A stretch of DNA of 53,478 nt from Macrostomum lignano (lineage: Eukaryota), in assembly GCA_002269645.1 (NCBI GenBank), contig NIVC01002114.1:150697-204174 (forward strand), in the 5' to 3' direction. Shown here piece by piece: positions 31,801-35,448 of the stretch. The notes below the pieces were generated by a model. That model did no database searches, was not told the DNA's origin, and was given only the letters and a program-made list of their open reading frames with translations. How positions within the stretch are numbered: the first letter of the stretch is position 1; each line of letters starts with the position of its first letter. The position numbers were made by a program, and so were the translations under genes.

Positions 31801-34800
31801 CAGCACCAGGGGCACCAGCACCAGGGGCGCCAGCACCAGGGGCGCCAGCACCAGGGGCGCCAGCACCAGGGGCGCCAGCACCAGGGGCGCCAGCACCAGG
31901 GGCGCCAGCACCAGGGGCGCCAGCACCAGGGGCGCCAGCACCAGGGGCGCCAGCACCAGAGGCGCCAGCACTCACGCAGTCTCCGCATCCAGCTGAGCAT
32001 CCGCCGGCAGCTGCCAGGCCTCCTGCAGCCGGAAGCGCAGAGAAAGGTCGCTCAGGACCTCCAACACGTGGGCCTGTGAAAGGTCTTCAGAATTGGCATT
32101 TTCACTGGCTGGTACCGGGGTGTCCAACTCCGCCAGCAGCTGAGCGAGAAGATCTGAGAGGCCGCCAGTGCCAGCGATGATCAGCAGGGGCAGCCGGTGA
32201 CCCGCATGCTGGAGTTCAGGGAGGTCAGGCAGGTGCTGCAAGATCCGCCCACCAAAACACTGCAGAGTGGAACGGAGGTCATGGCGGGGTCCTCGGCTGT
32301 TGTTGAATCTGAAATTATTCAAACAACAGGTATTTTACAACAGGTATTGTACAACAGGTTATTGTAAAACTCGACTGGCTGCACAACAGTTGTTAAAAGT
32401 CGTGCAGTTGGACGAATGGAAATATGGCACGTAAAACTATTTTTTTTACCTTGAACGCTGGCTCTTGACGCCGTCTTTGGTTCGGAGTCCCTGGCCCGGC
32501 TGCCAATGTCGGCCAGTCCTTCAGCAGCGCCTCAAAGCGACTGCGGAACAGCCAGCTGGTGTCGGAGCGGCAGCAGTCGCAGCCGCGGTCTCGGTGCGCG
32601 CAGTCCACCAGCAGCAGGTGGTTGTGGTTCGGGTCCAGCGAGTTGGCGCTGCCGTCGCTGTCTCCATCGCTGGACGAATCGGATTTGTAGTGAGCCGGGT
32701 TGCAGCCCTGCGGGATTCCATGGTCCCTGGGTTGTTAGGCACAGCCAATCACAGCCCAGCCAATCACATCCCAGTCAATCACAGCCCAGCCAATGACAGC
32801 CCAGCCAATGACAGCCCAGCCACTCAGCTCAGCCAATCACAGCCCAGCCAATCACAGGGCAGCGAATCACAGCCCAGCCAATCCCAGCGCAGCCAATCAC
32901 AACCCAGCCAACTACAGCTCAGCCAATCACAGCTCAGCCAATCACAGCGCAGCTTACAGCGAAGCTCTCAGATCGAAGACACTCCCGGCCGGCCGAGCGC
33001 CCCCAGCTGCAAACCCCAATCGCTCGGACACTGTCCGGGCCATAGGCGTCGCAGAAGTCCCTGGCCGCCTGGCCGGTTTTTCTGGCCAGACCGGAGCAGC
33101 AGTCGGTGACGATCCAGGCACCTGCGGTTCATTAGCATAATTTATGCATAATTAGCTCCATAATTAGCGAGAGCACCGGATGAAGCTCACCTGAGCCAGC
33201 TGCCGTCTTCCACAGGCCCTTCTGCCAAGCCGCCTTGAAGGAGGCCTTGTCGCAGTCGCTGCCGTGCACGCTGAGCACCAGGGAGGGCCTGCTGAGGGCC
33301 CAGCAGCCCAGCAGCAGCTGCGAAATGTCTGCGTCTGAGCAGGTCTGGGCCACGCGGCAGAACTGGGGAGTGGGGAGGGCGGATGTTGTTGCCATGGTGA
33401 CAGGTACTTCGAGTAGGAATACAGCGACAGTGAGGGACTCGATTATGCACTGGTATCAAAACACAGGCCATCACCTGGACGGGGTTGGTAACAGAAACTA
33501 ATCTGAGGAGGGTTGCCATAGCAAGGTCGAGCATGGGCAAAAGTTCCACCATGAAAACGGACATAAGAAGTGTACCGTAGCAACTGTCAGCAGTGTTGCC
33601 ATAGCAACAGCAATAGTGTTGCCATAGCAACAGCAATTGTTTTGCCATAGCAACAGCAATTGTTTTGCCATAGCAACAGCACTGAAAAGTGTTGCCATAG
33701 CAACATAAATGAAAAGTGTTGCCATAGCAACAGCACTGAAAAGTGTTTCCATAGAAACAGCAATGGGAAGTGTTGCCATAGCAACAGCAATGAAAGTGTT
33801 GCTATAGCAACAGCAATGAATCTTGCAACAGGCACTCACCTGAGCGGTGTTTCCCAGGCCGGGAAACTCCACCTCCCCAAAGCAGTTGTTGGCCAGCAGT
33901 GCGGAGTCGCAGGTGGCTCCCCAGGCGCGCGGCTCGCTGTCGCGGCAGCCGTGGCTCCTCGCCGGCTCCAGTCGGCGCAGCCGCAGCGGCGCCAGGGCGG
34001 ACGGCGCCGAGGCCGCGGACTCCAGCAGCCGCAGGCAGGCGCGAGCCTTCGGACCCGCCTCTCTGGCGCAGTCCAGGGCCGACCTGCCCGACTGCGATTT
34101 GGGATTCGCTTCCGGTCTGCGCTTGTCTGCCTCTCCCCACTTCCGGTCTGCGTTTGACTGCCTCTCCCCACTTCCGGTCTGCGGTTGACTGCCTCTCCCA
34201 CTTCCGGTCTGCGTTTGACTGCCTCTCCCCACTTCCCGTCTGATCAATGCTGCCTCTCCCCACTTCCGGTCTGCGTTTGACTGCCTCTCCCCACTTCCCG
34301 TCTGATCAATGCTGCCTCTCCCCACTTCCGTCTGATCAATGCTGCCTCTCCCCACTTCCGGTCTGATCAATGGTGCCTCTCCCCACTTCCGGTAAGTGCT
34401 TGACTGCCTCTCCCCACTTCCGGTAAGTGCTTGACTGCCTCTCCCCACTTCCGGTAAGTGCTTGACTGCCTCTCCCCACTTCCGGTCTGATCAATGCTGC
34501 CTCTCCCTCTTCCGGTAAGTGCTTGACTGCCTCTCCCCACTTCCGGTCTGCCCCTAGAAGCAGAGATTCCTCAGGGCTCTCACCGAGTCCGGCAGCGCCA
34601 GGTCGCAGAGGTCGCTGACCAGCAGCTCGGCCAGGCAGTCGGCCTCCCCGAGCTCGACCGCCCAGTGCAGCGGCGCCCGGCCACGGCCGTCCAGCGAGTT
34701 GACGGCCTCCCGGACATCGCCGGCAGCAGCAGCGCCGCGGGAAGCGGGCGGTTGAGCCGGCAGGCCACGTGGATTGGCAGCTCGCGGCGCTGAGGGAGGC

Positions 34801-35448: not shown

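Follow-up and report, generated by a model that had tools for sequence, protein, structure and literature searches.

Ankyrin (ANK) repeats are reported to be absent from TRPM and TRPS channels, having been lost before the two families split (Himmel et al. 2020, PMC7306681). A 53,478-nucleotide stretch of the flatworm Macrostomum lignano genome (assembly GCA_002269645.1, contig NIVC01002114.1, positions 150,697 to 204,174; the whole stretch is hereafter called the window) raises the question of whether this holds throughout, as an earlier note on its sequence had placed ankyrin repeats N-terminal to the SLOG/MHR1 domain of a TRPM gene. Our analysis bears out this arrangement. A single open exon, exon 3, whose borders had been given exactly, runs from the last ankyrin repeat through a short linker to the TRPM motif CFGEVEFPG. 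The ANK-to-SLOG junction of the window gene is genuine and inherited, because the intact members of a flatworm subfamily share that build. In our judgment, the window probably contains a 20-exon TRPM2-clade gene of a flatworm-specific ANK-SLOG TRPM subfamily, the window gene itself being a mosaic paralog, which may be a partial duplicate undergoing decay or else an intact gene with indel errors.

Three M. lignano proteins served as references. P0001 is a UniProt model named "ANK_REP_REGION domain-containing protein", for which Ank_2 and LSDAT_euk are precomputed. P0002 comes from a different assembly, has window-type residues, and was the query of an exhaustive HMMER search, by which P0004 (PAA85706.1, BOX15_Mlig003066g1, 1781 aa) was found. 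The locus of P0004, L001, lies at NIVC01000307.1:105246-130392 in assembly GCA_002269645.1, and the gene belongs to the Mlig003066 group, BOX15_Mlig003066g1-g3 (PAA85706.1, PAA49471.1, and PAA76106.1). Exon 2 of the window gene joins exon 3 in phase 0 (..LPDS|SGRSALDC..), the splice that had been proposed earlier, and the same junction is found in P0001 and P0004. Exon 3 is identical to L001 at 248 of 252 nucleotides. For exon 2, which the earlier note had put at ~34830-34584, the 3′ end holds and the 5′ end is corrected by the acceptor AG to the start listed in Table 1.

The intact relatives carry a complete version of this build. In Pfam, P0004 matches Ank_2 (32.9 bits), SLOG, the TRPM2-like domain, and Ion_trans, and its C-terminus is a NUDT9H (Nudix) domain (E 6e-20 to human NUDT9, 1q33). 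Lack of Nudix, previously taken as a trait of the subtype, is thus a property of the window copy only, and the 2.5-3 ankyrin repeats counted before give way to four in the intact relatives, P0004 included. Two M. lignano paralog groups have the order ANK, linker, SLOG intact. ANK together with SLOG, with Ank_2 scores of 33-37 bits, is found in M. lignano Mlig025325g2, Clonorchis sinensis KAG5447154.1, Opisthorchis viverrini XP_009171463.1, Schistosoma mekongi KAK4474030.1, and Paragonimus westermani KAF8568535.1. The order is kept in seven proteins from five genera, and the ANK positions P537, H539, L553, L573, and L588 are invariant across nine aligned proteins. An AlphaFold model of P0001, a protein of the paralog type (9-sequence alignment), has a predicted local distance difference test (pLDDT) score of 75-91 over residues ~496-630, where it forms four helix pairs. 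This region superposes on designed ankyrin repeat proteins (DARPins) with a root-mean-square deviation of ~2 Å over ~125 residues (Foldseek). The structure prediction that the earlier note had called for thus yields, in the paralog-type P0001 on which it was tested, what is in the model a stacked helix-turn-helix ankyrin fold. P0001 is itself a fusion model, the first ~400 residues of which fold like the CLASP2 TOG4 domain (Foldseek E 4e-10); this CLASP-like part, joined there to the ANK-TRPM N-terminus, is absent from the window.

The window gene lies on the minus strand, with 20 exons from 35448 to about 19200 that all show GT-AG borders and consistent phases, and its closest proteins are all from Macrostomum lignano. 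The spliced model gives an open reading frame (ORF) of 1452 aa with one base restored and of 1469 aa with three. Its SLOG (MHR1/2) region scores 70.3 bits against LSDAT_euk (profile positions 1-148, Pfam cut-off 25.7), and 88.6 bits (profile positions 1-228) once the missing bases of exons 6 and 7 are restored. MHR3/4 is matched by the TRPM2-like domain PF25508 with 157.7 bits over profile positions 2-257 of 257, and the six-transmembrane domain by Ion_trans with 44.4 bits over model residues 983-1241 (both Pfam). The alignment with TRPM structures spans S1-S6 and the TRP helix, and TRPM3 chains align as far as model residue 1408, in the putative coiled-coil region. The best solved relative is the Nematostella TRPM2-like channel 6co7 (E 9e-103), followed by zebrafish TRPM2; further PDB matches are TRPM3, TRPM5, and TRPM4, so that the best PDB and database matches are all TRPM. 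The alignment of TRPM structures begins at model residue ~195-217, inside exon 3, and therefore ~195 residues precede the canonical TRPM sequence. By eye, the protein retains the pore motif FGEL and, at the Ca2+ site in S3, N and D of WNVID.

Two exon borders of this model called for a choice. Exon 20 has a paralog-type donor, GAG|GTGAAG, at ~19217; without it, the frame stays open across a (CTGT)n tract until the stop at 19111-19109. For exon 7, the acceptor at 32259 keeps the ORF but shifts the conserved half of SLOG out of frame, and we preferred 32308 because of the comparison with P0002 and P0004 and the Pfam coverage. Nearly all TRPM introns (window positions 19000-36000) are filled by a minisatellite of their own with a period of 3-31 nt, among them a 699-nt (TAC)n array at 27871-28569 and a 15-mer repeated over 1.4 kb at 20350-21751, and several of these arrays are common to the window gene and the paralog locus.

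How widely is this architecture distributed? In a neighbor-joining (NJ) tree of 44 full-length relatives (1047 columns, 100 bootstraps), the window gene, the Macrostomum paralogs, the trematode proteins, and one cestode protein form one clade with 100/100 bootstraps, and the best BLAST matches for this flatworm ANK-TRPM clade are reciprocal. Its apparent sister group comprises Mlig001812, a 2242-aa protein of S. spindale, and a 2116-aa protein of Clonorchis; judged from protein length alone, this is probably the TRPM_PZQ clade. A consensus-ANK screen of the 150 closest representatives detected N-terminal ANK in flatworm proteins only, and none of the 14 non-flatworm relatives with pre-SLOG N-termini of >200 residues gave an ANK match. 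The sequence comparisons thus support the view that the ANK-SLOG-TRPM arrangement is lineage-specific, as confined to flatworms among these 150 representatives. One record that ranks among the closest matches to the flatworm query, P0006 (MGH0117658.1, labeled "UNVERIFIED_CONTAM" Acipenser sinensis), is a 2355-aa protein with 7-9 tandem copies of SLOG plus the TRPM2-like domain; it may reflect an error in modelling a tandem array, or the sturgeon assembly may contain foreign DNA.

The proposal of an undescribed lineage-specific subtype therefore stands as to lineage, and it does not stand as to absence from public data. ANK+SLOG proteins are already public as UniProt entries and as full-length NCBI records from M. 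lignano and trematodes, with automatic annotation of both ANK and SLOG. Our literature search found no paper describing ANK+SLOG TRPMs, and a 2026 paper on TRPM evolution contains none of the flatworm terms looked for. Flatworm reviews mention ANK-like modules for TRPM_MCLZ only; to the remaining schistosome paralogs they assign SLOG and a channel, in some cases with Nudix as well (PMC11731825, PMC12861061). One flatworm figure, known from its legend alone, has the ankyrin domain named among the drawn features. We rate the ANK+SLOG TRPMs as an apparent lineage-specific domain gain in TRPM2-type channels that is visible in databases and undiscussed in the papers found.

We compared this build with that of known channels. 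The solved TRPM2 structures (Nematostella 6co7, zebrafish 6drj, and human 6mix) share with the window protein SLOG/MHR1-2, MHR3/4, six transmembrane segments, the TRP helix, and, putatively, the coiled coil, but they have a Cys-rich N-terminus of 60-130 residues with no ANK, whereas ~195 residues with ANK precede the first aligned residue in the window protein. TRPA, TRPC, TRPN, and TRPV likewise carry an N-terminal ankyrin stack on a six-transmembrane TRP channel, but they have no SLOG, MHR, or NUDT9H. N-terminal ankyrin repeats have been reported for Schistosoma TRPM_MCLZ (Smp_333650; PMC11731825, PMC12861061), which, compared by description only, is said to have no SLOG/MHR1-2 or enzyme domain, whereas ANK and SLOG coexist here. 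TRPM_PZQ, the praziquantel target, resembles the ANK-TRPM clade as a SLOG plus Nudix-type TRPM (PMC11731825); no ANK was detected in the presumed members of its clade that we scanned, the orthology of which is deduced from length only. The trematode records named "TRPM2" (Clonorchis, Opisthorchis, S. mekongi, and Paragonimus) are ~27-28% identical to the window protein and have a longer linker with a C-x-C...H motif.

The window copy itself is of composite origin. Homology to L001, introns and minisatellites included, covers 35394-32483 and 19828-18716; between 32483 and 19828 there are only three short matches, under exons 8, 9, and 18. The homology to Mlig003066 breaks off sharply inside exon 1 (35394) and inside exon 6 (~32483). 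Exons 2-5 are about 99-100% identical to Mlig003066 in nucleotide sequence and have the same borders, the ANK-SLOG exon included, and the two genes share the same minisatellites in their introns as well as a closely similar exon 20. Exons 7-19 have 31-81% amino acid identity to Mlig003066, roughly 50% for the old segment, and almost no DNA similarity. Upstream of 35394, the window and L001 are unrelated. Because young, near-identical segments flank the old, divergent exons 7-19, we regard the window gene as a mosaic, and the pattern of matches suggests that, in a genome that has recently been duplicated, Mlig003066 and an old paralog recombined, or exchanged sequence by gene conversion, to give rise to it. 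On either side of the breakpoint in exon 6, P0002 has residues of the window type, which argues against an assembly mis-join at this point. Unlike the window copy, Mlig003066 has an intact ANK repeat 1, 56 N-terminal codons that are absent from the window, and NUDT9H; for the last of these, no tblastn match to P0004 residues 1454-1781 was obtained anywhere in the window. Where the paralog has its NUDT9H exons, the window has two head-to-head Ty3/gypsy-like retroelements.

The ankyrin exons of the window copy, as assembled, appear damaged. Exon 1 begins with a portion (35448-35395) that is unrelated to the paralog yet has an in-frame ATG at 35448. The first ANK repeat of P0004, GELLSCRLLHAAVAADNRDGVRGLLEMA, is absent from the window; a remnant of ANK repeat 1 lies at ~35308-35231, its pieces spread over three frames relative to L001. 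Five deletions in exon 1, of 8, 7, 5, 2, and 14 nt compared with the paralog, total 36 nt, and therefore the net frame is kept. In exon 2, the two ANK peptides that had been read there are in different frames, -3 and -2 (tblastn); compared with L001, a CCC run at 34713/34712 is one C short. Restoring one base brings Ank_2 to 27.8-30.4 bits, with the Pfam cut-off at 27.3; in the frame that is open as assembled, Ank_2 (26.2 vs 27.3) and Ank (20.5 vs 21.1) both stay below. Profile matching, also proposed earlier, is thus significant for LSDAT_euk and Ion_trans and depends on the restored base for Ank_2. If the sequence is spliced canonically as assembled, the TRPM frame is not kept beyond exon 2. 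Because of the frameshifts in exons 1 and 2, the window copy as assembled cannot encode a full ANK module. Exon 6 lacks one G at ~32498/32497 and exon 7 lacks one C at ~32187, both in G/C runs, and these gaps disrupt the conserved second half of SLOG. P0002 reads in frame through both sites, and the restored window sequence matches it exactly.

Several points weigh against our overall reading. The splicing of the window gene was deduced from paralog gene models and splice-site logic, and even the restored Ank scores exceed the Pfam cut-off by a few bits only. Clade membership was read from a simple 44-sequence NJ tree that lacks a rooted outgroup. An Anoplocephala (cestode) protein aligns over the ANK region with a score below threshold, and an S. 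japonicum model has no ANK region, probably as a result of truncation. The function of the ANK module is purely one that we infer. The lesions in exons 2, 6, and 7, finally, each remove a single nucleotide from a run of C or G in a GC-rich exon, and P0002, from an independent assembly, keeps the ancestral frame through the sites in exons 6 and 7; for these two reasons, the single-base gaps may be assembly errors.

These last observations favor an account in which all lesions are assembly artefacts and the true locus encodes an intact ANK(3-4)-SLOG-TRPM without NUDT9H, that is, a functional Nudix-less paralog close to the one pictured in the earlier note. Exons 8-20 are flawless and the exon 1 deletions are in frame overall, which also fits this account; we consider it possible and somewhat doubtful, since deletions of 5-14 nt are untypical of consensus errors and the copy has also lost the beginning of the parental exon 1 and, at its 3′ end, the NUDT9H exons. 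Moreover, the intron beside exon 2, which is near-identical to the paralog, has no such indels (one indel event in 405 aligned nt, the event being exonic), which speaks against the idea that the window is riddled with homopolymer errors. If the lesions are instead real, the 5′ part of the gene is decaying, and the partial mosaic duplicate is either a pseudogene or in reduction to an ANK-less or ANK-poor channel. We give this serious weight, if short of even chances. It accords with the eight frame-affecting indels across exons 1, 2, 6, and 7, with the missing parental 5′ end and NUDT9H, and with the retroelements at the 3′ end, but the 13 divergent middle exons have perfect frames and splice sites, which speak for long-term function. 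No window-type NCBI protein was found in searches that also missed P0004; because P0004 was overlooked despite long identical stretches, this absence is weak evidence for decay and is not evidence of no expression.

A functional gene could also result from a new splice donor, with exon 1 ending at 35253 (phase 1) and a TRPM retaining ANK repeats 3-4 only, behind a low-complexity N-terminus. The 2-nt deletion at 35251|35250 makes GTGAGG (35253-35247) where the paralog reads GTTCGAGG, which has no donor-like site, and the ORF stays continuous because phase 1 compensates the 1-nt gap in exon 2; combined with the exon 7 acceptor 32259, this gives an ORF of 1440 aa with no base restored. Such splicing is predicted from sequence alone, it needs the weaker acceptor, which destroys the conserved half of SLOG, and long ORFs easily arise by chance at ~65-75% G+C, so we think it improbable. 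We give almost no credence to the idea that the ankyrin exons are a separate upstream gene or resemble ANK by chance. P0001, with its N-terminal 400 residues of CLASP TOG type, is evidence that gene models at loci of the ANK-TRPM family are sometimes fusions. Against this, the last ANK repeat and the start of MHR1 share one exon, for which reason we rejected an origin of the repeats in an upstream gene and which contradicts the separate transcript that had been envisaged as a refutation; the conserved order and invariant ANK positions described above, and the predicted match to DARPins, point the same way.

On the reading we prefer, that of a flatworm-specific subfamily with a mosaic member in the window, intact members consist of four ANK repeats, a short Cys/His linker, SLOG (MHR1/2), MHR3/4, six transmembrane segments with the TRP helix, a coiled coil, and NUDT9H. 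From this build we infer that they should function as tetrameric, Ca2+-dependent, nucleotide-gated (ADP-ribose-type) TRPM2-like cation channels. The ANK stack is tethered ~60-100 residues before MHR1 and would therefore sit at the cytoplasmic periphery, where it would most plausibly provide a docking, tethering, or protein-interaction surface or make contact with NUDT9H. Nothing in the analysis specifically supports the mechano- or redox-sensing role that the earlier note had suggested. In the window copy, the part from mid-exon 1 to mid-exon 6, together with exon 20, would be a recent copy of Mlig003066, and exons 7-19 would be the old divergent TRPM body; the 56 codons with which the parent begins, and every NUDT9H exon, would have been lost, and the result would be a partial duplicate in decay or, alternatively, an intact gene whose sequence is distorted by homopolymer or other indel errors.

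As a tentative evolutionary scenario, a platyhelminth-wide TRPM2-type subfamily, apparently sister to the praziquantel-target clade, may have gained a four-repeat ANK module before the macrostomid/neodermatan split and would be an undescribed exception to the ankyrin-free view of TRPM and TRPS; in M. lignano, a young mosaic copy would have shed NUDT9H and be remodelling its ANK, a domain loss in progress. A flatworm clade with a canonical ANK stack before SLOG is a clean counter-example to that view, by later domain gain. The clade adjoins TRPM_PZQ and TRPM_MCLZ, on which the anthelmintics praziquantel and meclonazepam act, and neither an activating ligand nor a function is known for its members (PMC11731825). 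Localization or gating could depend on the ANK module, a point for which M. lignano offers a tractable, free-living model. Being mosaic and possibly broken, the window locus is a poor representative of the clade, and the intact Mlig003066 is the better object of study.

Table 1. Positions in the window of the exons of the TRPM gene, the parts and lesions of its ankyrin exons, and the repeats at its 3′ end
Feature	Position	Strand	Remark
Exon 1	35448-35218	minus	GT donor 35217; paralog-homologous part 35394-35218
Deletion sites in exon 1	35308|35307, 35280|35279, 35261|35260, 35251|35250, 35232|35231		
Exon 2, ANK repeats 2 and 3	34789-34584	minus	206 nt vs 207 in paralog; acceptor AG 34791-34790
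Exon 3, ANK-SLOG junction	34091-33840	minus	phase 0 at both ends; AG acceptor, GT donor 33839
Exon 3, ANK repeat 4 or cap	34091-34017		
Exon 3, Cys-containing linker	34016-33885		
Exon 3, MHR1 start	33884-33840		
Exons 4-7, SLOG/MHR1-2	33362-33191, 33121-32958, 32707-32450, 32308-31976	minus	
Exons 8-13, MHR3/4 (TRPM2-like domain)	31230-30997, 30690-30534, 28905-28852, 28770-28631, 27839-27552, 26821-26593	minus	all intact, phases match
Exons 14-19, pre-S1, S1-S6, pore, TRP helix	25956-25802, 25010-24896, 24430-23999, 23089-22894, 22345-22213, 22012-21810	minus	all intact
Exon 20, putative C-terminal coiled coil	19563-19109	minus	~94% identical to Mlig003066
Retroelement 1	18591-14770	minus	gag, protease, reverse transcriptase, and RNase H matches
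Retroelement 2	11337-14447	plus	ORFs broken into four pieces
(GACA)n microsatellite halves	18593-19204 and 10846-11170		split by both retroelements; exon 20 runs into tract

The rest of the window is, like the gene region, eukaryotic and repeat-rich. On the minus strand, 44468-46303 is a ~1.8 kb tandem repeat of TPKDTNPHNTERHKPSQHRKTQTL-like units that is open in all three frames, and the 398-aa ORF that follows it (44535-43342) has no Pfam match. A 671-aa ORF at 2305-4317, also on the minus strand, contains an ANK-looking stretch, LSPLDMALIRGHQSIALLLL, and gives no Pfam match at E <= 0.001. Among the neighboring genes, an exon on the same strand at 50193-50498 has a sub-threshold match to the MFS_1 transporter family (31.3 bits vs a cut-off of 33.4).

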